This document shows, one piece after another, positions 1,949-61,407 of a DNA stretch of 64,000 nucleotides. Within the stretch, counting starts at the first letter, position 1. Each line of letters starts with the position of its first letter. The position numbers and the translations under genes were made by a program. The stretch is from Camelus dromedarius (Eukaryota). The notes beneath the pieces were generated by a model. The model was not told the origin of the DNA and searched no databases. It saw nothing but the letters and a program-made list of their open reading frames with translations. The stretch is taken from contig NC_087444.1 in NCBI RefSeq assembly GCF_036321535.1, forward strand, positions 37,200,001-37,264,000, given 5' to 3'.

Positions 1949-4900
1949 CTTGGGGATGAGCCAGCCAAACTTGTGATCGTTGACACCCAGGAGGAAGGGC
2001 ACAGAGTGGAGCTGCCTCTCCCTCAGGAGCTCATTGGGGGTCTTGGGAAAGAAGGTGCTGTCAATGGTGTAGAAAGCTGTACCCTTTTGCAGGAGAAAGC
2101 AAGTCAGAGGGCCTCCCAGTCAGGATCAAGCCTCAAAATATGGGACCCCAAAGGTCACTTGGCTGCATGTCTGAGTGGCTAAACCTTGAGGAAAGGGAGG
2201 GGATGAGGTCACTAGGGCGAGAGGACCAGTGAGGGTCGGGAGACCAGACAAGCGATGCTTCTGAGCAGTCCTCTTCCTTAGAAGACAGGCCTGCCCTTGA
2301 GGCTGGGGCAGCCCTGCCTTCATGGCGCCGGGCCTAGTTGGGCCCTCAGCCACTACCTCTCAGAGGTGGCTACCTTAAGCCTCACCCCGGACTGCAAATT
2401 GCTCTCTGCTCCCACAGGAACTGGACAGGACCCCTTCTGTGCCACTGCCCACCACTGTCCCCTAAGAGGTGGGTTTACCAACTTCTCTGCAAGCATCAGT
2501 TCCTTGCTTGACTTCTGCCGAAGGCACTGCAACATCTCAGCCAAGGAGTTAGAGCCACAGGCCAAGGAGCTGGCAAAGCTCTGGGGACAGACAAGAGTGT
2601 CTTGCCTCTCTCTCTCATCCATCATTGCCCACCTTCCAGCCCCCTGCCTCCCATAGAGAGGAGATGCATCCATAGGAGGGCTGGGGTGACGATGTTAGAG
2701 ATGGGACCTTGACACTAGCCAGACACCTGCCACCAACCCAGAGAAGCCTTCCTTGCTCACCAGCCTGGGTGGTCCCCAAGCAGCCTTTGTGTCCCCCATT
2801 ACATCATACTGTCATTATCTGTATGTGTGTTTAGGTCTCCTTTACCCTTCTGAGGAAAGTGTTATTACCAAGTTAACTCTATTCTCAGAGCCAGTGGGAT
2901 CAGTAAAGATTTGTGGAGTGAATAAGGAAATGAGATATAGTTTAGATGGGGAGGGATTCCAGCATGGGCTACTCTGGTAGGGAGGGAATGGGGGTCAGTG
3001 CTGAGGCTGGAAGCAGATCAGGGAGTCAGTAGGAAGCGAGGCTGAAGGGATAATTTCTTGGATCATGTCATACCTGGTGGCACTGATGGTTTTCTCTGAG
3101 TTCTCACAGGTTGTGTGCTTCCTTCATCCTAGTTGGTCCCTCTCTGCCAACAAGAAGCTCTCTACTGGTAAGACCTCCACTCTGGGACTCCAGGGCAAAC
3201 ACAGGGTGGGATGTGGCAGGTACAAATGGGGTAAGAGAGTGAAAGAAATGCAGACCTGAGCCAGGGGCCAGGGGTCAGAACTCAGAAATCCTGGTAAGGT
3301 GATGATTCCACTCTGTGCTATAGCTCTGTGGAACAGCCCTGCAGCCAGTGGGGACAGGACCTGGGTGCAATGTAGAGGACAGATGGCCGTCAGAAGAGGG
3401 CAGAAGATCTGGGAGGTCTGGGGCCACAGGAGACACCATCACTAGCCCCTTTGGTGACTCACCAGGGCAGAGACGATGCAGGCACCAGCAGATCCACCAA
3501 AGATGGTGACAGAGTTGAAGTCACCTCCAAAGGGGGTGATGTTCCCCTGCACCCAGCGCAGAGCAGCCACTACATCAAGGAAGCCCCAGTTGCCAGGGGC
3601 GTGCTTGTCCCCAGTGCTGGGGGTAGAGTGGGGCAGTGGTTAGGGTGGGCTGGCTCCCCTGACAAACTTTCTTCAGCCTTTGCAGGTTTGCTTTGAGCCA
3701 GCCACTAGGATGCCAGACTTTCTCCTGCTCCCCAAGTCTGGCCTGGCTATGAACCACACTTGGTATTCATATACCCAGCACGTGGAATGGGAGGGCCTGG
3801 CTAGGCCAACTGCCAGCTCTGGCTCTTAAGTGCTTGCTAAAGCTCTTTGTTCCTTGACCCCCATGCCCTGCTGGCCCCAGACCAGAAGCCAACACTTTCT
3901 TCCCAAAGGACAAAGTCCACTGAAAACTGCTGGCTTTGGTTGAGCCCCTCCCTCAGGGTGGAGCCTGGGGAAGCACCCTTCTCTGCCTCAGATATCCTGC
4001 TGGCCCAGGAGATCTTCCTTCAAGCTCCAGACCCTCACTCTAGATCCCCAGCTCCTCTCACGAGCTGGCCTCTCCTCAGTGCAGTCAATATCCTCTGCCA
4101 GGACTGCCACCTCACCTGAAGAAGCCAGGGATCCCCAGCCGGTATTGGACTGTGACCACTACCATATCCCCGTAGGCGGCCAGGGCTGAGCCATCGTGGG
4201 AAGTGGCGGCGCCAACCACGAAAGAGCCCCCATGGATCCATGCCATGACCTGCAGAGATGGCCACGGGTCAGTGACACCCCCCAGCCTATCAGGGCAGGT
4301 CATTCATGGGACCCCCGGAGTGGTTTCAGAGCAGGGATGGCAAGGTGGCAGGCCAGGCGGAGTGGGCTGGATGGACAGGGCCCTCTGGGCTGCACACCGG
4401 CCTCCCAGCCCCTGAGGTGGCCTCAGCTGGGCTGTAGATGTTGAGGATCAGGCAGTCCTCCGAAATCGGAAAGAGCTGGTGTTTTCCGTCCAGCGTAAAT
4501 CGGCTGTTGTTCATTCTCTCCACATCCTGTAGGCACCTGTGGCTGGGGAGGAGCCCGAGGGCCAATAGGTCAGCCCCACAAACCCCAGCAGCTGGACTCC
4601 CACTACTTGCTAGCTTGCCCGCCTCCACCGGGGCTCCTTACATTGCAGGGACCGTGCTGGCATCCCGCACACCCTCCCAGGACGGCGCTGGGCGTGGGGC
4701 AGAGAACTGGCTGGGCCCCAAGGGTGGCTGGGTGAACGGGATGCCCAGGAAGACATTCATGAGCCGGTCTGTGCCCTTCACACCCACCTGCCGGCTCCGC
4801 ACGCTGCCAAGGGTGGTGTCCACTTCAGGCTGAGTGATCCCTGGTCCTGAGGGCAGGACAGAGGGGCTGTGGGTGAGTGGCAGCTTCCACGAGAGGATGG

Positions 4901-5478
4901 GTGGCAGACGGAGTCACTAAAATGTTTGCTCTCTGAGCACCTCTGCCACGCCCTGTTCTGAGCCCTTAGGTGAACTTCCCCAGGCTGCCTGTGAGATGGT
5001 CTTTGTGATTACCCACCACTTCCTCCTCCCTACCCTGCATCACCACCTTTCTCCTCCAGGCCAAACTATTACTTAGAGTAAAGGAACCAAGCTCTTCTGG
5101 AACTCACAGACCTGTGGGGTGGGGGATGGGGAGTGGGCTCAGGCCTTGGGCCAGGCACTCACCCTCTCTGAACCTCAGATAGCTCACACACACACACACA
5201 CACCAGCCTGTGAGGACAGAGCCCCCGCCCAGAGAGGACATACAACCCCTGGCATTCCTCCGAATGAATGGAGGGCTCCTTCCCTGGGCAGGCTGCCCAC
5301 CCTTTCCTGTCCCTACCTCACTCTTGCCCCCTCCCCTCAAATCCTCCCACAAACCCAGAAGCTCCCACCTCTGGAGGCCCTGCAGGGGTGTCTTACCAGC
5401 GGCTGTAGCAGAGAATGGCAGGAGTAGACAGGCCACCCAGACCAGGACCCTGGACCCAGTTCTTACTGCTGCCTCCAT
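1949..5478 (-). CDS. CES3: Carboxylesterase 3, coding exons 1-8 (later exons not found in the window); probably catalytically impaired
   Basis: Exons (minus): 5478-5397, 4846-4642, 4536-4398, 4249-4116, 3616-3463, 3360-3256, 2580-2479, 2086/2083-1949; phases compatible. Signal peptide [34 protein letters not shown] oxyanion motif, GGSAG nucleophile. The acid position reads GVNDHKFGW instead of GVNNHEFSW, and the exon 8 acceptor is ctcctgcAA. Confidence 0.93.
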
Positions 5479-6456: not shown

Positions 6457-6608
6457 NNNNNNNNNNNNNNNNNNNNNNNNNNNNNNNNNNNNNNNNNNNN
6501 NNNNNNNNNNNNNNNNNNNNNNNNNNNNNNNNNNNNNNNNNNNNNNNNNNNNNNNNNNNNNNNNNNNNNNNNNNNNNNNNNNNNNNNNNNNNNNNNNNNN
6601 NNNNNNNN
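6457..6608. other. Assembly gap (152 N)
   Basis: Run of N inside an L1 fragment. Confidence 0.99.
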
Positions 6609-7594: not shown

Positions 7595-8290
7595 CCACCA
7601 CAATGAGATACCACTACATACCCATTAAAATTAATCAAACGTAAAAGACTGATAAGACCAAGTGCTGGTGAGAATATAGAGCAATTGGAACCCGCATATA
7701 TGCTGGTGGGCATGCAAAAATGGTATAGTTGCTTTGAAANNNNNNNNNNNNNNNNNNNNNNNNNNNNNNNNNNNNNNNNNNNNNNNNNNNNNNNNNNNNN
7801 NNNNNNNNNNNNNNNNNNNNNNNNNNNNNNNNNNNNNNNNNNNNNNNNNNNNNNNNNNNNNNNNNNNNNGACTTTATTAAAAATAGACAAAAAATAGAAA
7901 TCACTCAAATGTCCATCAAGGGGTGAATGCATAAAATGTGGCATGTCATGTATAGAATACTACTCAGCAAGAAAAGAGAAGAACTACTGGCTGAATCTCA
8001 AAAACAGTGTACTAAGAGACAGAAGCCAGTAAAAAGATGATTCCATTTCTATGACACTTGGAAAAGGCAAACTATAGCGACAGAAAGCGGTTTAGTGGTT
8101 GTGTGGGTCAGGGTGAGGGCAGTGCAAAGGGTCATAAAGGAAATTTTGGAGCAACAAATGCACCCTAAAACTTAGTAGTTGTGTGTCTTATACATTTATC
8201 CAAATTTATCAAACTATACATCTAAAATGGGTGAATATGTTTGTATGTAAATTATTCTACAACAAAGCTGTTAAAAAATAAGATTACTAA
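7595..8290 (+). mobile_element. Old LINE-1 3' fragment with an N-gap at 7740-7869 (130 N)
   Basis: aaaccaccacaatgagataccactac...ccaagtgctggtgagaat...tatagaatactactcagc...gattccatttctatga. Confidence 0.85.
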
Positions 8291-8679: not shown

Positions 8680-9135
8680 CAGAGGGAAACTGCTTTGGTG
8701 GAACAAAGAGGCAGAATGAACATAATTGCTACCTTTACCTGTTGAGATAAAATATAAGAGAGGGGTTTTTGCAGGGAGAGGGTAAAGTGAGAATAAAAGT
8801 TTAGGGAAAACAATGAGGTAAGTAACGAAAATAATGTGGATGCACCCAGTGAGTTGGTGAGATAGGAGAGCAAGTGATGCTGAGCCAGGTATGGGCAGAC
8901 ATTCCCCAAAGCATCCTCCTTCAAAGGGAGAGGAGAGAGGGTGGGAAGGGAGTGGAGGTGAGGAAGGGAGGATGGGGCCAAGGGCCCAGTGGGATGTTGG
9001 GAAAGGTAAACTTCCATTGGGATTTGCCCACCCCCAGCTTTGTGGGAGGATTTATTGAGTGTGTCTAACAAGAAAGGACCCATGGCAGGCTTGGCAACTA
9101 ACATGTGGTAAGTTCTTAAATGTTTGCTGGGGGGA
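8680..9135. mobile_element. L2 fragments downstream of CES2
   Basis: Purine-rich L2-like text and L2 3'-end motifs (tttattgagt; ggtaagttcttaaatgtttgctg). Confidence 0.6.
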
Positions 9136-9141
9136 TGGATA

Positions 9142-9217
9142 GAAGAAGGAAGGAAGGAAGGAAGGAAGGAAGGAAGGAAGGAAGGAAGGAAGGAAGGAAG
9201 GAAGGAAGGAAGGAAGG
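9142..9217. repeat. (GGAA)n tetranucleotide microsatellite
   Basis: About 18 perfect GAAG units. Confidence 0.98.
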
Positions 9218-9686
9218 GCTATGCAAATGAAGGAAAAACTACTGGTTCCTCACTGGGTGTGTGTGGGCACCTCTGGCAGACCCCCACCTGCACTCAAGCC
9301 CACACCCCAACCCCTGATGCAGGAAGCTACAGTTCTGTGTGCTTCTCCTTGGCCTCCATTAGCTCCTGCATCTTCTCAGGTAGGGTCTTTGTCCAGAACT
9401 GGAGCCTGTGGGCCTTCAGGGTCCGGCCCACTACAGGCTGCATGTCCAGCTGCAGGTATTGCTCTCCTCCTGGTCAAACAGGGGCCAGTGGGGCAGACCC
9501 TCGCTGTTGGGGTTCCTGTAGACATGCCCACCCATGGAGCAGTGTGAGAGTCACTGTGAGCCCTACCAGGCCCAGACCCGAACATCCTGACTGAGGCCAG
9601 GCAAGGCAGCCAAACAGGGCTTAGGGAATGAAACAGGGAGGTTTCCAGAAGTAGGAAAGAATCTACCTCCCACCAGAGCATCAGCT

Positions 9687-9700
9687 CCACCAGGTGGCAG
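9687..9700 (+). promoter_or_regulatory. Strong CTCF motif, forward orientation, in CES2 intron 11
   Basis: CCACCAGGTGGCAG matches the CTCF core exactly. Motif match only. Confidence 0.65.
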
Positions 9701-10419
9701 AGCAGCCTGTGTTCTTTCCTGACAGAGGGAGGCTCTGTCAGTAATAGCACTGTCACCTCCCCTCCAGATGACCCAGGGATGGCATAAGTGTCCAGCATCC
9801 ATAACGCCCCTCTTTGTCCAAGAGGGTCCTGGAGCTGGGGAGAGGGCTGCCACTCAATTAAAGACATCTATGCTAATGAGGTCACCACAGACAAGGGAGT
9901 CCTGATTGGTTCAAGATACACCCCTCAACTGTGGAGGTTAAAGTAAGGATGCAACATCTCACCCATTTCGAGCAAAGTTGGCCCAGTACTTCATCATCTT
10001 CCTGCTCAGCAGCAGCTCCTCCTCAGTCATTTTGACTACAGAGCAGTAGGACAAAGGTCCTGGTCAGGGTAGCTCCAGGGCAGCATGTGGGTCATTTCGC
10101 AAACCACTCTCACCATCCCAGGTGTAGCTTTCCCCAGCCCCTCCCTGCCAGCCTAGACCTGGCTCTCTGCCTGCTCCCCAGGCCCTCTCCTCGCCCAAAC
10201 CCCATATATTCATCTCAGGCTCTGGCTGACCTGACACTAGGCTCAGGCCTGACCCAGAGGGCTCCCTTCTTCCTTCTGATACTGGAAGGGCATTTAAGAA
10301 ACAAATATGCCTTTGAAACAGCCCCCTCTGCACCCATGCCAGATACCCACAGTCAGGGTGGGGAGAGGTGGAGGGTGCATAGGTCCCTGTTCGAAAAGCC
10401 CTGTACTCCAATGTGAGCT

Positions 10420-11060
10420 CAGTCTTTCTGGCTGTCAGATCTTGGACACTTGATCCCGTCCTGTTTTGGAGCCTCAGTTTCCTCATCTGTACAGTGAGGG
10501 CAATTACCCTCTCTCAGGGACTCAGCCAGTGTACCGACTCACATCCTGGGAATGAGGGGCCTCTGAGGAAACCCGCCCAGGAAGACTCACCATAGCGGCC
10601 CCGGAAAGGGTTTCCAAAGACAAAGAGAACCTCATCTCCATGGTCTGCTTTCACATAGCTTGGCTTGATGTCCTTGGAGAAGCTGGGTTGATGCTGGAAC
10701 TCGTAGAAGTAGACAGGGGCATGGGAACCTGGGGAGGTGGGGTAGACAGGCTATGACGTGGCGGCTTCTCACCTGGAGTTTTCTTGAATTACCCATGGTG
10801 ATGACACAGCTAAATCCAAAGCTGGTTGGGATCTGGACAATGAGGCGAGGGAGCCCCAGGCGGGAGCAAGGGCAGTGGGAAGGGCCTGGGTTTAAACTGT
10901 GGCTTTGGAACTTCCTGGGGTACGGTCTTCGGCAAGTCACTGAAGGTCAGTGAACCTATTTCCTCATCTGTAAAAAGGAATAAATGTCTGTCTCTTAGAC
11001 TAGCCGTGAGGATTTACCAAGATGAAAGATATTAAGTGGCTGGCACCTGAGCCCAATAAA
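10420..11060 (+). mobile_element. Two MIR fragments in CES2 introns (about 10420-10505 and 10890-11060)
   Basis: agcctcagtttcctcatctgtacagtgagg; ggcaagtcactgaa...tttcctcatctgtaaaaagg. Confidence 0.7.
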
Positions 11061-12597
11061 CAGACGTGGGCTGGGACCTGGACACCAGTAGACCTCAGCT
11101 GTTACCTGCAGCTCTGAGTTTCTCCCTTGCCAGTCTTCCCTTAGTTCCAGATGTACTCACGCTGAAAGTTTGCTACTTGGAGTGCAGGGATCACAAAGAG
11201 GTAGTCTTCCATCATCTCATGGAACTGGGTTTGGAGGGTCAGGGGGTCCTCATTGTCTCCTATGTACTCCTCCATCAACAGGTCACCCATCTCAGGAGAC
11301 AACATCTGCCCCAGGTGGATCAGGAAGAGTCAGGTTAGGCAGGCTGGCCGGGGCAGGGAGGCGGCAGGGTCAGGACTGGGGAGATGGATCCTGGGATGGG
11401 ATAAGGAATCAGGGGAAGGGGCCAAGCTCTGCAGGGGTAGTGCATGGACAGGGTATCCGGGAGATGGGCTTCCCGTGCCTTGGAAGAGGAGAGGAACCCC
11501 TCCCATGGGGGCAGGTCCCCAGAAGCCTCACTAACATTGTTGATGCTTTCTGCAAAACAGCCTTCACGGTCTCTCTGTTCATTTCCGTCTGGGTACCATA
11601 TTTGATCAAATCCTGGGTGGTGGGGGGGAGTCTCGAGTTGGAGATGGGATAGCCTGGAGCTATGAAATCCCTAGGCTCCCCCACGAAATGGGATCCCGGC
11701 ACCTAGAGGCTTGGGAATGGGCCTTACCGAGGGGATGATCCAGCCGTACTCATCGTTGTTGACACCAATGATGCTGGGGACAGGTTGAAAGTCAGCAGAG
11801 GCCAGAAGCTCCTGGGGGTGCCTGGGCAGGAAAATCCCATCCACCAGGCCAGGGATGATCTTGAAGGCCTAAGGGGCACTCAAAGTCAAGTTGCAGACAT
11901 TTTCTGATGCCACAGACATCTTCTGCCCCTTCCTTGCTCATTCCAGGATGCTCACACCCACACCAGGAGGTCCGACACCTGCGTTAGCATGGCCTGGCCT
12001 TAACTCCCCATCCAGGGCTGTGAGGACCCCAAGGTGTGGAGATAGAGTAACCTTCCCAGGGAGTATGAGGGGCACTCAGGCTTGCCTGTCCTACACCTAT
12101 GGGCCCCCTTCCTCCACACCCGCACCCATTCAGTCCAACCTTGTTGATGGCCAGAATCTCCTCTTCACTCTTGCCCCGCAGGCAGTTCATCAGGGCCTCT
12201 GAGTCAACCTGGCCACAGGCAGACAGGTTGGCCACTATCTATAAAGAGACCAGGTAGGGGCTAGCTCATCCTTCCAGGTAAGGGAGAGTGGTTATCCTGA
12301 TGCTCCAGTTGGAGGCAGGTGTACCCCAAATCTCACAGAGTATCATGAGTGGATTCCTACACTTTTGAAATTATTCTGATTTCCCTGATGCTCAGAGGTC
12401 TCAGCTAGAGGGGCCATCCCACCTGCCAAGATGGTCTGGCCCATGATGGGGGCCCCCAGGGTGTCAGTTTTGGGGGCCACAGAATGACTCAGTCTCCGTG
12501 CTGGTAGAGGTCTGTGGATTCTAAGCCTGAAACAATCCCGGGATAGACAGCTATTCCCAAGGTGCTCTGATGACAGGGGAGTCCTTGTCCCCATTTA

Positions 12598-12858
<261 letters not shown>

Positions 12859-15549
12859 CTAGACCCAGTGTAGTGCAGCCACTTGATCCAGGTAGCCCCA
12901 GTTGCCAGTTGCATGTATGTCTCCAGTGCTGCGAGGGGGCAGGGATGGCGGTCATGGAACGGTCCTGGCTTTGTCAGCCCACACTGCCCAGTCCAGCCCC
13001 AGTCTCACCTGAAGAAGCCCAGCACACCCAGGCGGTACTGGGTAACGACCACTATGACGTCCTCGAAGGCTGCCAGTGCAGACCCATCATACATGGAAGC
13101 CATGCCCATCACAAGCAAGCCACCATGGATCCACACCATCACCTGGAGAATCCAAGGCACAGATACCACGTTGCTCCCACCCAGCCCAAACCCCACCAGG
13201 GATGCTGCTTAGACTAACCACCACCTTGGCTCTGTCTGTCTAACAATGTGGACAAAACTCGATATATTCATGCCCCGGGGCTGAAAGTGACCCAAGTTCC
13301 ATCAGGAAAGCTGGGCCTCCCACACTTTGGGGTCTGTCCCATGTACCAAGGCCTGGCTCCATTTCTCCCAGAACACTCTCTGAGGTGGAAAGAAAAGGGG
13401 TGTCTCCCTGATCACCCCACATGCATATCAATTAAGGAAAGTGTTCTCTATTCTCATTGGCCCGACAGATAATCCCTGGCTGGGGTCTCTGGCCACCTCA
13501 ACGGGCAGCCCTCAGTCACCTGAGTGGGTCTCCTGTGCATGAGTTGGTTAGGTGAGTCCCGGGTCCCTCCCAGGGCCACCGTTTCTGATCTCTGGGAGCA
13601 GCCAGGGTTCTGCAACCCTGTGCCCAGGGGTCAGCCACCCATGCTGGGTAAGAAGGACTCTCTTAGATCTAATAGTAAGAAGCTTCTTAATAGGGTCCAC
13701 ACTGCAGTGGAGCCCAGGCTGATCCTGTCCTTTTTCAATTTTCTTGCAGAAAAAATGTCCTCCCACCCCTTAGCCAGCTGTGACCTGGCACTCACAGGCA
13801 GGTTGGAGCCCTCGTGGGTATGGGCAGGTGTGAAGATGTTGAGGTACAGGCAGTCTTCAGACATGGAGGTGGAAGGCAGGGTCATATTCAATACTTTCAC
13901 AAACATTGCATTCATGCTAGCCGTATCCTGCAGACACCTGGTGGCAGTGGCAGGCAGTCAGTGCTGGAGCCGTGTCATGGCCATAAACAGATCCCACCTA
14001 CCCTTGGTCCCACTTCCCTCGATACCCTGCTCGCACATGGTCCTTTCCTAAAGCCCCTTTGCACCAAGTAAGTTACAGGCCACAGGTTCTGGGGAAGCTG
14101 TCTTCTGGAGAGGCGTCAAGCTTATGAAGTCCTTGGATACCAGTCCTCCTGAGGCTGAGAAATCCTGACTCTTGGGGGTCTCTATGAGAACCATTGGTTG
14201 CATGTGTTGACACTCACCACCATATCACTGTACTCAGATAGGCCTGGAACAGGGAAGTAGCCCATATACATGTGCTGCCAGAATGAATGGATGTTAATTT
14301 CTCACAAGAAGGGGAGTGGGATGTCCCTTGTTCCAAGTCAGACTCTCAAGGAACCTCATCACTCCCATATAGTTTCCAGCTGCAAGAATATATACATGCC
14401 CCTTGGTCAATGGCACCCAGCCCTGTCAGCTGGTGCAGTGACTGTGCAGAGTGGGGGTTCCCCACTCCTCAGGGATCTACTGTATCTGCTGCTACAAGGT
14501 TCACACCTCTCCCAGAGACACCTCCTCTTGGCATAACTAGAACGTGGGGAGATGTGTATCTCTGCTCATCCCTTCAGCATGTGGAGCTAATGCTCTTTGA
14601 GTGTTAAGCCCTCAGCCTGGGAGTTACTCCACCCTTTCAAGGCTCAGCATGCTCATCAGAAAAATGCATGTGGGGATCCATCAAACTCAGAGGGAAAACT
14701 GGCTGTGGGCATTTAGATAAAATGACAATGGTGGCCTGGCCCAGAGCTCTGAGTACCTTCTATCTCCAGGGCCTAGAGTTCCCTGCACTCTCTGCTTACA
14801 TGGCCGGGTGGGAGGTCCCATCCTTTACACCACTCCAAGATTCTGGGGGCTCAGGGGGCACAAATTGCAGAGGCCCCAGAGGTGGCTTGGCAAAGGGAAT
14901 TCCCAGGAAGGTGTGGACCCTCACATCAGTGTTCTTCATGTGGACGAGACTCCCTCGCACTTGCCCTGTGTGTGTCATCCGGACAGGGCTGGTAGAGTCC
15001 TGGCCTGTGCGCAGAGAGATGGATATCAGGGTTAGGTCTCCCCCATCAGCTGCCCTCCCCAACTGTTGATATGGCTACCTCCTTCCTGTCCTCAGCTCAG
15101 TTCAAGGGACACAGGTGTACCAACATTTGCTTTGCAGATTTCCTTCCTGTATCTCTGCCCTGACCCTTGCCACTGCCTTCACTGAAAGGTGCCAGCCTTT
15201 CCCACCACACTCAGTGAGGCTCCCTGGGGCTTTGCCCCATGGTTTAGCGCCAGGAGCTTCAAACAAACAGCCACATGAGCTTGATGGGAGAGTGTCCTTT
15301 CCACTCACCGTGTGCCAGGTCCTAGGAGGCAGTAGGAGAACTGTGGGAACAGGACAGACAAGGTTCCTGCCCTTAAGGATCTCACACTCTAGGTGGAAAG
15401 AAATGACAGAGAGAGAGTATCCTCCAGAAAGTGATGTTATGAAGAGAACTACAAGGTGAAGTGCAGGTGAGTCTAGAATGTGAACAGTACAGCCCGCCCT
15501 GCTGTGGGGATCAGGGAGGCCTGAAGAGGCTGCACGTCACCTCACAGAG

Positions 15550-17210
15550 AAAGAGCTGATATTCACCATAAATAAAGAATGTCCACAAATGAATAAGAAA
15601 TATGCCAGCTGCACATATTTGGTAAAAGAATATGAAATGGAGAAAGAATATGTTCAGACAGAACAAGGAAAATAAATAAATGGCTCTTACACAAATGAGA
15701 TGTTCATCTCCCTTGTGCTAAGAGAAATGCACACTGAAATCTGTGAGGTCAACAACTTACATTGTCACAAAAAACAAGACAGTCAGATGTTGTATGTTTT
15801 CTACTGGAAGTCCACTGCACCACATATGAAGTAGTCTTTCCCCCAAACAAAGCAAAGCAAAACCTAAACTCTAAATCTGATCAAGCCTCTAGAACACAAA
15901 TACAAGTTTAGAGACATACAAGGGACAGAGAAACAGTTAAAAGACACCATAGGGAGATAAATAAGTTTATACTGTATAGCACAGGGAAATATATTCAATA
16001 TCTTGCAGTAGCTTACAGTGAAAAAGAATATGAAAATGAATATATGTATATTCATGTATGACTGAGAAATTGATACAATATTGTAAACTGACGATACCTC
16101 AATAAAAAAGTAAACATATAGATAATTTTAAATAAAATCTGATTCTATAAAATAATTTTTTAAAAAAGATACCATAGGGATGTAATCAGCAAAACCCCAA
16201 TTCTGGATCCTCTCCAGAACAGACAGACTAGTTTCTTCAACACACCAACAAAATTACAAGGAAAATAAAAGAGAGGAAGAGGAGGAATCTGAAGATTGAA
16301 AGAGATTCATGAAATACTTCAAAAAGACAATAAAAATGTTGGAAAGGACGTAGAAAAACTAGGACATTCATACATTGCTAGTGGGAAGGGAAAATGGTGC
16401 AGGTGCTTTGGAAGATATTCTGACAGTTTTTCAAAANNNNNNNNNNNNNNNNNNNNNNNNNNNNNNNNNNNNNNNNNNNNNNNNNNNNNNNNNNNNNNNN
16501 NNNNNNNNNNNNNNNNNNNNNNNNNNNNNNNNNNNNNNNNNNNNNNNNNNNNNNNNNNNNNNNNNNNNNNNNNNNNNNNNNNNNNNNNNNNNNNNNNNNN
16601 NNNNNNNNNNNNNNNNNNNNNNNNNNNNNNNNNNNNNNNNNNNNNNNNNNNNNNNNNNNNNNNNNNNNNNNNNNNNNNNNNNNNNNNNNNNNNNNNNNNN
16701 NNNNNNNNNNNNNNNNNNNNNNNNNNNNNNNNNNNNNNNNNNNNNNNNNNNNNNNNNNNNNNNNNNNNNNNNNAGACAGAAAGCAACCCATCCGCTGAGG
16801 TTGGGGCGAAAGGGGAATTGATGTGATGAACTCTGAATATACTAAAAACCACTTTAAGTGGGTGAAAGTTATGCTATGTGAATTATATCTCAAATCTGTT
16901 ATTAAAAGAAGTACATCTACCAATGTTTAAAGTATAAACCTTATTTAAATCATTGTTTTTAAAAAATCATAAATATGAGATAATATGAAATGAGAATATT
17001 TGATTAGATATTTGATTATACTAAGGAACTATGAGAGAAATATACCTTTTATTTTACTAGGACAGGATAAAAAAAAACTTACAGATGATATGATGTCTGG
17101 GATTTGCTTCAAACAAATAACGGTGCAAAGGAGAGGTGATAGTCCAGACAAAACTAAGGTGCCCAGGTATTGATATTTGTTGAAGGTAGATCATGAGTTT
17201 ATTACATTAT
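15550..17210 (+). mobile_element. Cluster of L1 fragments in CES2 intron 1, with an N-gap at 16437-16773 (337 N)
   Basis: L1 motifs (aaatgcacactgaaatc; ggaaaggacgtagaaaaactaggacattcatacattgctagtgggaa; gaattatatctcaa). Confidence 0.8.
15956..16163 (+). mobile_element. 5'-truncated younger L1 3' end with a 17-bp TSD, nested in an older repeat
   Basis: Body tatagcacagggaaatatattcaatatcttg...aaaaagaatatgaaaatgaatatatgtat...AATAAA. Flanks aaaagacaccataggga (15939-15955) and aaaagataccataggga (16164-16180), one mismatch. Confidence 0.8.
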
Positions 17211-18999
17211 CCTCTCCTCCTCAGATGGGGAGCCCTGTGGTGCTGTGTGGTCTTGGGCAGCCCTGACCCTCTCTGTGCCTCAGGGTGCAGGGAGTTATCC
17301 AGTCAGGCTCCCAATTCCCCCGGTGTTATCTCCACTGGCTCCCACCTTGCGATGCCTTTCCTCCTGCAGGCTCAGGTTCTTCCTCTGCAGAATTTGGCAG
17401 GCCTGAGCCTGGTTTCATAATAAAAAGTTTAACAAAACAAAACAAAACAAAACAAAAAAACAGGCTCAGGGAGCTATACTATCCCACACCTATCAGATCA
17501 ATGTGGATCAACATTCTTGATGCCACCTGGTGTAGGTGAAGCCAGAGTCAGCAGCTACAGGCCCCAAAGAGGGCAACTGAGCAATATCTTTCCAACTCAA
17601 AAGGCCCACCCTTCTCCCCAGTATCATATTGTCTACACAGCTCCTTATGGGATGTGATGTCTGTTCCTGTACTTCACTGTTGCCAGTGGCCTCTAATGCT
17701 TGATGTTTGTTATAGCAAAGGACAAAACCTGCTAAAATGTCCCTGATCAGAAGCTGGGTACATACAGGATGCTTTCTCTTTGAAGAGAAGCCCTTCTATT
17801 AAACAGTATGAAGAAGTTCTACCATGTGCAGGTGTGGTGAGGTCACCCCCTGTGTCAGGAAGTGGAAAAGCTAGGCACCAGAAAGGGAGGGAATTTCTGA
17901 TCATTTAGGTGAAAACCAAGGCTGCATGTACACATCTGTTCCTGGTAAACTCCTGGTCAGTGTGTGGAAGGTCCCAGAGAACTTGATGGTCCCTGTTGGA
18001 TAACACAGAACTGGATGGGACAGGAGAGGGTGAGAGCCATCACCTGTACTTATCAATTCTTTCTTTCTGAAAGTGGGTCCAATCCAACATAGCAACATTT
18101 CTAAAAGGAGGTGTCAGCGAGGCCTAGTAGATCGTGGTGCGGAAGGTTCTGGTGAACTCCTGGAGCCTGATCAGTGATGGGTAAGGGGGAAGCCCTGTGG
18201 AGTTGGCCACAGGGGATGGATTAGTGTGGACAGGCAGATTCCACTGGGAAGTGAGAGGATAGTCAGGCTGCACAGGCAGAGCCCGTTTGGATAAGAGGAT
18301 CACGCCCTTCCAAAGGGGGTACAGGAGGTGCAGACACACCCAGGCACAGTCCCCACATAGCCTAAGCTACCTATAAGGGCTGACATAAAGAACGATCACC
18401 TTTGCCCTGGAGGCCAAGGTATGCCCTCCCCCAGGGTTGGCACATAGGGTGAAGAGAAGGAGGTGCTAATCTGATAGGCTTTAGGATGGGGAGGTGGGGA
18501 GCTGGGAGGTGTGCTCCTATAGCCAGAGCCAGTAACTTGCCTGGGGTTCCTGTGGAAGGGGGCTCAGTGGGTGTCAGGACGCCCCTTTAGCCAAGGATGC
18601 AACACTCAGAGCTAAACGGCAGCAGAAAGATACTATTATTTCTGTTATTACCCAAGGGCAGCGCCAGCTCCACCACAAACACTAAGAAAGAAAGTCCCAA
18701 ATCCGCCCTTCCCTCCCAAAGACCACCAGGTGCTGCCAGAGTCCCTAGGGGCCGCTGGGCCCTCAGTGTACTGTGACCTGGGACAGCCCCTGCTCTCCAT
18801 GCGCCTCAGGGGGCGCACCCTCATTGGTCACCGTGTGTCCGGTCTGGCACACGGTTCAGGGGCTATAGCTCTCCAATGGTTCCCACCTCCTCGACGCCTG
18901 TCCTCCCGCAGCCTCGGGTCCTGACTCTGCAGAATTTGGTAAGTGCTATCCCGGTCTCTGTTGCCTTATGCGGGACCCTCACCCTGGCCCGAAACGAGA

Positions 19000-20600
19000 A
19001 GCAGGAACCTGAAGGTCACGGCGCTCAGCCACAAGCGAAGTCTGTCCAGTGGCATGGTGGGCTCACAGTCTTCTCTTTTTTGCGCTACCGGGAAGCAAGC
19101 TGCGTTTCACCGAGAGGCTCCTCGGGGGCCGGTCCAGCAGTCGATTAGTGAGTGCCCCACCAGACCCGGAGTTTGGACTGGGCAGACTGGGCAGGGAGTA
19201 GGCGGGGAAAGGTGAGTTTGGCAGGAGAGTGGGACTGAGCAGGCAAAGGCCAGTGGCAGTCACGGTCGCTTGCCCCCTGCCCAAGCCCACTTAGGCCTTC
19301 TCCGAAGGGGCCTTGTGGCTTCTGCAGCCCCTCCGCAGTATCAAGAGCCCTCTCCTCAAACCTGCGTTCACTATCCTTACAGTCAAAGGCCCGATAAGGG
19401 TGTTGGGGGGCGAGAGAGAGCAATCAGCTGTGATTGGGAAAACCAGGAGAGCTTCCCTGAGGTGCATGATCAGGATTCACAAAGACGGAGAAACAGAAAC
19501 GACCTTCGACCTTCGGTCAGAGAGAAGGGAACCGCCTGAGTAAAGGCAGGGAAGTGTGACTGCCCATCATTCCAAAAACTCCTCCTTGCTTTCAGGGATT
19601 AATTTCCTGGGTCTGCCTTCATCGCCTTACTGTTCCTGGTCCGAGGGTCTTTGCGGGCCCCCTCCCTACTAGGCAATGCCTCGTCTTTTGAAATGCACAA
19701 CGGATTGTGGCACTCATCTTAAGGACACCCTCAGCCCCATCCCGTGTCTTTCCCTCTTCCCACCTTCCGCCAAAATCGAGTTCACGTTCACTTATTCATT
19801 TGACAAAAACTGAAAGAATGACTGCTGGTCCGCGCGCTAGGGGCCAGGAGAGCACTCCTGGACCAAAGTTGCAGCAGGGGCTGCAGGTGCGTCACCGTGA
19901 AGTCGCGAAACTCAGTGAGCCGTGCCAGGAGAGGCAACTCTGGGCAAGGGAGCGCCCGCCCAGCCTAAGGGGCAGAATTCCCGGGGGAAGTTATGCCTGA
20001 AGGAAGATACGCCAGGCTCAATCTCAGACGGGTCTTCAGTGTCCCAGCCTTGGCCTCCGCCGTCCAGCACGCTACGGGCTCACACACGGGGTCTCTTCTC
20101 CGTGCCTTTGCTGGAGTGCTCCGCATTTTCCCAGGTCTGCGCAGAAAATGAGCATAGGTCACTCTTCCACTCAAACCTCAGGCGGAGTACCGGCAGCGCA
20201 GCGTGTCCCTCGCCTTAACCCGTCGCCACGCCACGCCCCTCCTCGTTCCCCGGAAGTGCGCAGGCAGGAGCGGAAGTACACGCCTACAGTAGCCCGCCGC
20301 GGTTCCGCAATGGTGGGCGGCAGTGGGATGGGGGGCGGCCTCTTGGAGAACGCTAACCCCCTCATCTACGAGCGCTCTGGGGAGCGGCCAGTGACCGCGG
20401 GCGAGGAGGACGAGCAGGTTCCAGACAGCATCGACGCCCGCGAGATCTTCGATATCCGTCGCAGCGGGGCGCGGGCGGGTTCGCGGGGGCCTGGGAGGGG
20501 GGATGAAGTGATTCCAGTAGTCGGTGGAGCAGTATCAGGGCCAGGCTTTCCCGGCGGAGGGTTGTGAGTGGACAGAGGCGCAGAGTCCCCTTTCCTTCAC
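19000..20600. promoter_or_regulatory. Head-to-head CES2/CIAO2B promoter region, CpG-rich
   Basis: ATGs at 19055 (-) and 20310 (+) are 1.25 kb apart. CpG-dense from about 19830 to 20570. ETS-type CCGGAAGT at about 20250 and CGGAAGT at about 20271. Confidence 0.8.
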
Positions 20601-59465: not shown

Positions 59466-61055
59466 TTAACTCCCCTTGTAATATGCATCAATTGAGTCTG
59501 AGTTAAAATACACCACCGTGACGGTGATATCATCCCTGTACATCCTCGCCAAATCCTCCGGTAAAGTCAGCATCGCTGTCAGCCGCTCCGGCTCCAACTC
59601 CCCATACTCGTTGCTTCCTATGGCGTATCTGATCAGACGTGTGGCTGCGTTTTGGTCAGCAGCATGGAGCCCTTGGGCTTTCCTCTGCAGCAGCAGGCTC
59701 TGCATGAGTCCCAGATTGGCAGGTCTCTGGGCCAGGTCGGGCTTGTGCCGACCCGCTTCCGCCAAGTGCTCCACCACCAGCCTCACCACATCCTCATTGC
59801 CCAGCACATCCCATAGGCCATCTGAGGCGAGCACAAGGAACTTATCCTGGGGCCTCAGCCTGTGGTATGTGACCTCAGGCCTAGCTGTCAGGTAAGGGGG
59901 AGTATAGTAGTGGGGGGGGGTGAACTGGTAAATGTTGAGGGCCTCGGTGTCAAAGCCACTCTCCAGGACGCTGCGCTGCAGCTCTTTACTCCACTTCAGC
60001 TGGACGTCCCCAAATGCCCTGCAGGGCATGAGGACGCCCAGCAGCCTGTTGTCCATGATGACTGTCCTGTCCTCTGACTCAGGATGCTCCCTCTTTAGCC
60101 GTGACAGTTCGGTTGGGTTCCAGGCATTGTGGTCCCGGGTGAGGGGCAGACAAGACCATATGCCATTGTCCTCTTGGACACCAAGGATGGCCCGGCAGTC
60201 ACCAGCATTTGCCACATGCAAGTGAACTCCGTCGACGTGGGCCATACAAGCTGTTGCCCCAGAGAAAGCAACCTGTAGTGAAAGGTTCCTGGTCATCTCA
60301 TCTTCCAGGGGGACCTGGATCTCTAGCGAGATGTCAGAATCCAGTCTCTGGAAGGAGTACATCAATGCTTCCTCAATGTTCAGCCCCATTTCCATGTGCA
60401 GGTCAAGCAGCTCCTGCCAGTAGACACGGAGGTGATCAAGGTGCACTGATGTGACATCCTTGTAGATACTGTCCCCTGGGTGCTTGAGCCACTGCAGAAT
60501 GGGCAGCAGGGGCTTCATGCTTTCCATCGCCCCCTCCATCTGTTCCAGGGTCTGCTGGGACATCAGTGACACTGCCACGTAGTAGAAGAGCCTCTCACTC
60601 ACTGCTTGAGCANNNNNNNNNNNNNNNNNNNNNNNNNNNNNNNNNNNNNNNNNNNNNNNNNNNNNNNNNNNNNNNNNNNNNNNNNNNNNNNNNNNNNNNN
60701 NNNNNNNNNNNNNNNNNNNNNNNNNNNNNNNNNNNNNNNNNNNNTTTGGGACTCCATTAATGAGGTCAAGAATCTTGTGGGCCAACTCACCGGCTCGCAG
60801 CACCTCATTTACCTGCTCAGGGCTGAGCTGCAAGTGAAAATCTTCTTCTGTTGACATGTGTCTGTAGGCTTTCTGCAGAGCAAAGCCACCACACGGGGCA
60901 CTGTTTTTTAGGGTAGCTGGTCCCCAGGCAGAGAGCCTCCATTTTGATTTATCCCTATTTGAGGCACATCTTGTATATAAACGTTGTCCTCCTCGTAATG
61001 TGGCAATGCTGTTCCTTGCAGAATTTAAAATCCAGTAGGACACAGTACTTGACAT
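59466..61055 (-). CDS. PDP2: Pyruvate dehydrogenase phosphatase catalytic subunit 2, single coding exon, 529 aa
   Basis: ATG at 61055 (MSSTVSYWILNS). PPM motifs ANAGDCRA, RAFGD, ASDGLWD, RDDITV. The DGH motif falls in the N-gap 60613-60744. Acceptor ttccag at 61110/61109. Confidence 0.97.
   Translation of the reverse strand: MSSTVSYWILNSARNSIATLRGGQRLYTRCASNRDKSKWRLSAWGPATLKNSAPCGGFALQKAYRHMSTEEDFHLQLSPEQVNEVLRAGELAHKILDLINGVPXXXXXXXXXXXXXXXXXXXXXXXXXXXXXXXXXXXXXXXXXXXXXAQAVSERLFYYVAVSLMSQQTLEQMEGAMESMKPLLPILQWLKHPGDSIYKDVTSVHLDHLRVYWQELLDLHMEMGLNIEEALMYSFQRLDSDISLEIQVPLEDEMTRNLSLQVAFSGATACMAHVDGVHLHVANAGDCRAILGVQEDNGIWSCLPLTRDHNAWNPTELSRLKREHPESEDRTVIMDNRLLGVLMPCRAFGDVQLKWSKELQRSVLESGFDTEALNIYQFTPPHYYTPPYLTARPEVTYHRLRPQDKFLVLASDGLWDVLGNEDVVRLVVEHLAEAGRHKPDLAQRPANLGLMQSLLLQRKAQGLHAADQNAATRLIRYAIGSNEYGELEPERLTAMLTLPEDLARMYRDDITVTVVYFNSDSIDAYYKGS
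60613..60744. other. N-gap of 132 nt inside the PDP2 CDS
   Basis: Frame is preserved across the gap (AA + 132 N + T = 45 codons). Confidence 0.99.
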
Positions 61056-61407
61056 TCTGAAACTGTACAAGAAAATGTGTTTCTTCAGCAAAAAGTTTTT
61101 TCTTTAAACCTGGAAATTAAGAGTTTAAGAAACTTTTAAATTTAATTTTTTAAAAATACTGACTTCTGAAAGTCGGTTAATCTCAAAATACTTAAGCAAG
61201 TCTCCCTACCTCCTACTGTAACATATAAACACATTCCAGCAAATGTAGAAATCAGGGTTTTAAAACCTCTGCTCTTACAGAATCACAGAGGGCTTTTCCC
61301 AAGGGCCCCCTTTCCTTCTTCCCAAATCCTTTTCCTTGCCAGAGCCCAGTGCCAAGCTCCGGGGTTCACACTCACCAGTAGGTGTTAAGTGTTTGCATAA
61401 ATGTAAG

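Follow-up and report, generated by a model that had tools for sequence, protein, structure and literature searches.

A two-nucleotide frameshift insertion in the last exon of dromedary CES2, a probable young unitary pseudogene

Introduction

Two extra base pairs in the last exon of the single-copy camel gene CES2 are very probably a genuine germline insertion and, together with an in-frame TAG in exon 5, very probably make this gene a young unitary pseudogene. CES2 encodes carboxylesterase 2 (cocaine esterase), which is found in gut and liver and is the principal carboxylesterase of the intestine; many ester drugs are activated or cleared by it, and it also hydrolyses acylglycerols. The gene lies in a stretch of 64,000 nt from Camelus dromedarius (GCF_036321535.1, NC_087444.1, positions 37,200,001 to 37,264,000 of the forward strand), which we refer to as the window and in which our coordinates are counted. 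A preliminary description of the window, made from its letters alone, had proposed the frameshift as the second lesion of CES2 and the loss of the ER-retention signal as its outcome. Here, we examine the insertion, its consequences for the protein, its presence in independent data and its place in the history of the gene.

Results

The CES2 gene and its surroundings

Exons were mapped with the CES2 proteins of rhino and ground squirrel, and each junction was read. The resulting gene model and its neighbors are:

9327-19055, minus strand: whole CES2 coding region, 12 exons, ATG at 19055-19053 (tblastn, junction reading)
18983-19055, minus strand: CES2 exon 1 (signal peptide), 73 nt
14800-15004, minus strand: CES2 exon 2
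13796-13937, minus strand: CES2 exon 3
13009-13142, minus strand: CES2 exon 4
12670-12928, minus strand: CES2 exon 5, which carries the TAG
12859-12861, minus strand: in-frame TAG in exon 5, Gln elsewhere (WV-Q-QNIA), upstream of the catalytic serine (tblastn, Logan contigs)
12140-12238, minus strand: CES2 exon 6
11728-11868, minus strand: CES2 exon 7
11532-11612, minus strand: CES2 exon 8
11161-11305, minus strand: CES2 exon 9
10591-10728, minus strand: CES2 exon 10
9963-10035, minus strand: CES2 exon 11
9327-9515, minus strand: CES2 exon 12 (last), 189 nt including the ancestral stop, acceptor AG at 9516-9517 (alignment)
9051-9056, minus strand: AATAAA polyadenylation signal, 271 nt past the ancestral stop
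20310-20453, plus strand: CIAO2B exon 1
1949-5478, minus strand: CES3 exons

All 22 splice sites are canonical, with GT donors and AG acceptors. Exons 2 to 11 match those of rhino in length, and exon 12 has 2 nt more. Exon 1 measures 73 nt here and 76 nt in baiji, rhino and meerkat; the difference of 3 nt amounts to one codon and leaves the frame unchanged. With the two extra nucleotides set aside, the conceptual translation comprises 558 codons with one stop. The open reading frame is thus interrupted at 12859-12861 by the TAG and at 9462-9463 by the additional 2 nt, and these two are the only frame-breaking changes in an otherwise intact gene.

Several lines of evidence identify the gene as the CES2 orthologue. 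A genome scan with the Pfam family PF00135 matches its exons at C9:37210595-37214990, and its translated exons share 71-96% identity with CES2 from other orders, whereas the exons of the neighboring CES3 reach only about 50% identity to CES2. The gene order CIAO2B-CES2-CES3 is kept, with CIAO2B head-to-head upstream and CES3 downstream; in the same scan, CES4A-like exons follow beyond CES3, and CES1 and CES5A form a cluster of their own at a distance of 8 Mb. The ancestral frame retains the catalytic triad Ser-Glu-His and the HXEL motif (GQSAGG, NNDEYGW, KADHGDE, KHTEL).

The PF00135 scan, in which the best candidates were scored and very diverged copies may escape, shows a single CES2 locus, and the 2.3 Gb genome contains only one full match to the last exon. 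Neither the best candidates of the scan nor the last-exon search yielded an intact CES2 paralogue or retrocopy. Compared with functional mammalian CES2 genes (black rhino, P0204; meerkat, P0271; baiji, P0303; human), the camel gene has the same neighborhood, the same 12 exons and the same lengths of exons 2-11, at about 80% protein identity and with the codons for the catalytic Ser, Glu and His and for HTEL recognizable. The difference is that those genes are intact, whereas the camel frame is broken twice, by the exon-5 TAG and by the 2 nt in exon 12, and no intact product is possible.

The Gln before the catalytic serine in GQSAGG (12805-12807, minus strand) was considered as a third lesion and rejected, as this position is variable: among 30 mammalian CES2 proteins it is occupied by E in 23, T in 4 and Q, G and A in one each.

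The locus shows some further features. A long CTTC/CCTT microsatellite, which translates as repeated FLPS, occupies approximately 9100-9220 in the 3' flank of CES2, just before the AATAAA at 9051-9056. Runs of N are found at 6457-6608, 7740-7869, 16437-16773 and 60613-60744; of these, one falls within CES2 intron 1 and another within the PDP2 coding sequence, which consists of a single exon (59466-61091, minus strand). In CES3, the counterpart of CES2 exon 5 (3256-3618, minus strand) is broken by about 100 nt with stops, past which the coding sequence continues in a different frame; an extra intron or further decay may be the reason. Among about 80 mammalian sequences of CIAO2B, serine 5 is restricted to two from Camelus dromedarius, GenBank proteins to which the first-exon ORF of the window is 100% identical.

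The insertion in exon 12

On the minus strand, exon 12 reads TTT (9478-9476) GAC CAG GAG GAG (9466-9464) AG (9463-9462) CAA (9461-9459) TAC CTG, where the placement of the extra dinucleotide is ambiguous within the GAGAG run at 9462-9466. The frame that enters from the acceptor at 9516-9517 encodes 27 residues and then meets a TAG at 9433-9431, while the other, ancestral frame encodes 44 residues (QYLQLDMQP...KHTEL) up to the TAG at 9329-9327. The features that follow from this are:

9462-9463, minus strand: two extra bases (AG), net +2 nt against four other mammals
9434-9463, minus strand: ten foreign codons, including two new cysteines, in place of the natural C-terminus (shifted-frame translation)
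9431-9433, minus strand: premature stop TAG of the shifted frame, in the last exon (translation)
9330-9461, minus strand: 44 codons of the ancestral frame (QYLQL...KHTEL), now out of frame (translation, alignment)
9330-9341, minus strand: HTEL codons CAC ACA GAA CTG of the ancestral frame (translation)
9327-9329, minus strand: ancestral stop TAG (translation)

The preliminary description had given the same two extra bases and the same end points and translations for the two frames; all of these are correct.

The direction of the change is evident from comparison with other mammals. The coding sequences of the baiji, black rhino and meerkat CES2 genes were rebuilt, and their translations match the database proteins exactly. 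In a nucleotide alignment, exon 12 measures 189 nt in the camel and 187 nt in these three species and in a fourth mammal (L001); the stop codons line up, and a gap of 2 nt in the purine run CAGGA--GGAGCA is the only one in this alignment. In tblastn searches with the rhino and ground-squirrel proteins, exon 12 is found in two pieces which overlap at 9464, with a net gain of 2 nt. Further, exactly five residues separate F511 from Y517, gap-free, in all 30 aligned mammalian CES2 proteins. The 187-nt exon of the other mammals and the constant length between F511 and Y517 show that the lesion is a +2 insertion, and a -1 deletion from a longer ancestor was rejected on the grounds of exon lengths and the 30-protein alignment. 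Most likely, it arose through replication slippage, which would have duplicated the AG at the end of GAG GAG.

Lesions in independent data

Since the insertion was read from one assembly, the extra AG might be taken for an artefact of assembly or base calling, that is, a homopolymer- or repeat-type error, and the site is indeed a short purine repeat, a context prone to indel errors. Against this, the insertion is found widely in other data. We queried sequencing runs with 61 nt around the site (9433-9493), for which 29 of the 31 possible 31-mer words are specific to the insertion. All three sampled words occur in 20 runs, which belong to 9 studies and bear two coded organism labels, A and B, where taking B for a separate species is an assumption. 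Five of these 20 runs have label B and four are RNA on record. A search with three sampled words is weak, yet they are exact 31-mers, and one or more of them must be insertion-specific. For a longer query, 9250-13050, which spans both CES2 lesions, a share of at least 0.99 of the sampled 31-mers was reached in 20 runs, all with label A, that represent at least 18 samples and 11 studies.

In addition, three Logan contigs from three further runs (L002-L004), separately assembled, carry the insertion on differing backgrounds of nearby SNPs, all reading GAGGAGAGCAA; they were retrieved by exact look-up of a 163-residue ORF across the site and are 99.8-99.9% identical to the window. With insertion-spanning words in 20 runs and three such contigs, the artefact reading is effectively refuted, and we assign it next to no probability. 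The ORF used as the exact-match probe for the insertion allele is a chance ORF of 163 codons in the third frame (9376-9867, minus strand), which crosses intron 11 and the frameshift site and was annotated by gene callers on Logan contigs.

The stop in exon 5, at codon 208, is likewise present in contigs of three runs (L014, L015, L016), one TAG-bearing haplotype being 0.35% diverged from the window. Both disabling lesions are therefore confirmed outside the assembly, the insertion in runs and in L002-L004, the stop in runs and in L014-L016. The argument of the preliminary description that two independent lesions speak for real pseudogenization rather than for one base-call error holds, as both are found in other individuals; the absence of the AG from other individuals, which it had raised as the observation that would count against the insertion, was not what we found, given the 31-mers in 20 runs and the three contigs. 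One run, SRR36380800, has both lesions (contigs L002 and L014) and is the only one with contigs over both sites.

In L016 (run SRR34972871), the haplotype with the TAG differs by three SNPs and a 1-nt indel over 1.15 kb; among the SNPs, G>A at 12705 in exon 5 changes Gly to Ser in the ancestral frame. These differences indicate that the dead allele has gathered diversity. An exact look-up of the 114-aa ORF adjoining the exon-5 stop returned no record.

A segregating polymorphism would be another way to account for these data: the insertion would be common, intact-frame alleles would persist and CES2 status would differ between animals. This would agree with the fact that the methods used detect carriers only, that 8 of the 20 holders of the long stretch had a share of 0.99 and not 1.00, and that two large runs of organism A (X44, X45) contained none of the three words, which is no proof of absence. 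Yet no contig without the insertion was found, even in an allele-independent look-up with a neighboring ORF, in a method that shows presence and never absence; carriers occur in every study listed; and the allele, being found with several haplotypes and under both organism labels, is likely to be old and frequent. We consider persisting intact alleles quite improbable. Under the same presence-only scope, no Logan contig without the exon-5 TAG was found, and neither runs nor Logan contigs yielded a sequence with only one lesion. All runs found by these presence-only methods carry the lesions, and the insertion is common in the species and probably fixed, though heterozygous animals or rare intact alleles may occur.

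The RNA runs contain exon-12 words, which means that the locus is still transcribed. We counted this persisting transcription against our best explanation, as it is odd for a long-dead gene; it is expected for a young one.

Consequences for the protein

The ancestral protein has 558 residues and its frame breaks after residue 514. By itself, the insertion would yield a product of 524 residues, of which 514 are native and 10 foreign. The 44 residues lost include the last 23 of the Pfam COesterase domain (rhino 31-538, with the break after rhino 515), and homology to solved CES1 and cholinesterase chains extends to approximately residue 545. Across 30 mammals, 8 columns of these 44 positions are invariant and a further 14 nearly invariant. 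A model of rhino CES2 computed with AlphaFold2 from a 30-sequence alignment had a mean pLDDT of 39.5, which is too low for structural conclusions.

As a rule, a stop codon in the last exon escapes nonsense-mediated decay, whereas an earlier one triggers it. A message with only the frameshift stop would accordingly be expected to escape decay, while the exon-5 stop should trigger it.

HTEL has been experimentally shown to be the ER-retention signal of CES2 (PMC4624787), as the preliminary description had held for a C-terminal HXEL motif in general. Its statement that the lesion removes HTEL is true and understates the damage, which extends to 44 residues, 23 of them from the domain, and adds 10 foreign ones. 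This bears on the fate of the truncated protein, which had been described as possibly secreted or misfolded. An engineered CE2 that lacks only HTEL was secreted and active (PMC4624787). The camel allele has the loss of HTEL in common with it, but the engineered enzyme lacks 4 residues, whereas the camel product lacks 44, conserved elements of the fold among them, and carries 10 foreign residues. Given the loss of 23 domain residues, misfolding is likelier than active secretion; of the two fates proposed, the truncated CES2 would more probably misfold and be degraded in the ER than leave the cell as an active enzyme.

Selection, age and order of the lesions

By the method of Nei and Gojobori, over 555 codons, dN/dS is 0.36 in this lineage, within the range of three functional lineages (baiji 0.49, rhino 0.32, meerkat 0.23), and thus gives no sign of relaxed selection. 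Only one change, A74V, affects a site that is invariant in the 30 other mammals; when each of the 30 was left out in turn, the number of such changes ranged from 0 to 11. The dead frame has kept the codons for all eight invariant residues downstream of the frameshift. The dN/dS and the single change at an invariant site indicate constraint until recently, and hence a recent loss. A ratio in the functional range would be expected of a loss that occurred only a few million years ago on a branch spanning about 60 million years, and dates the loss rather than contradicting it. By a rough estimate from general mammalian mutation rates, two lesions in 1.7 kb would likewise agree with a loss of this age. 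If label B denotes another Camelus species, the insertion is either older than the species split or has crossed it by hybridization.

Concerning the order of the two events, we weighed two scenarios and give each somewhat less than an even chance. In one, the insertion was the original inactivation and led to a truncated protein without the retention signal, misfolded or possibly secreted, with the TAG following later. The insertion is common to two organism labels, hence not very recent, and its last-exon stop would have left the message to be translated, so that the protein would have been made; against this, neither order is favored beforehand, as there are two lesions and no outgroup with just one of them, and SRR36380800 has both lesions. 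In the other scenario, to which we assign the same slightly less than even probability, the gene was inactivated by the exon-5 TAG, and the insertion was added afterwards as a neutral scar that never had a phenotype of its own. With a TAG at codon 208, changes downstream are invisible to selection, and neutral mutations by slippage are frequent in GAG repeats; yet no data presented here order the two events.

Discussion

The loss of CES2 in the camel would be an ordinary kind of event, leading to a young unitary pseudogene, and it has a close counterpart in the neighboring paralogue. CES3 has been lost in the three Old World camels by a premature stop (PMC12127551), in the same lineage and through the same class of event, a unitary carboxylesterase pseudogene; the difference is that CES2 has a frameshift in addition to a stop. 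CES2 is not mentioned in that study, whose screen was based on RefSeq protein models that are 'corrected' in camels and intact in alpaca, so that it would not have picked up a gene whose annotation is that of an outright pseudogene. While the loss of CES3 is thus published, our full-text literature searches found no report of a CES2 loss in camels.

Protein databases are in line with such an annotation. A search of a set of 5.8 billion clusters, at 0.55-1.75 times the query length and with a profile that included the exon translations of the window (shorter models being missed), found no camelid CES2 protein, the best full-length match to the profile being about 81% identical. This absence of full-length camelid proteins fits the annotation of CES2 as a pseudogene in camelid genomes. 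Exact look-ups of ORFs from the window in a set of 15 billion proteins gave no match, and look-ups of CIAO2B for other camelids gave non-camelid contigs of about 76% identity and cluster lists that contained no camelid.

A more far-reaching scenario, which we regard as unlikely, is that the frameshift is the older lesion and is present in all Old World camels, that CES2 and CES3 were lost together in the stem of Camelus in connection with fat metabolism or diet, and that a truncated CES2 without its retention signal was made for a time.

For the status of the gene, the frameshift provides a second, independent proof of its death. The length of the last exon, 187 or 189 nt, is also a simple genotyping marker with which the loss could be dated across camelids. 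CES2 has been tied, by work in mouse and human, to obesity and fatty liver (PMC11845761). If camels are without CES2 and CES3, the behavior of ester prodrugs and pesticides in them may not be the same as in cattle or horses, a point of relevance for veterinary dosing, and a natural double knockout of lipid esterases in a fat-storing animal would be worth a physiological look.
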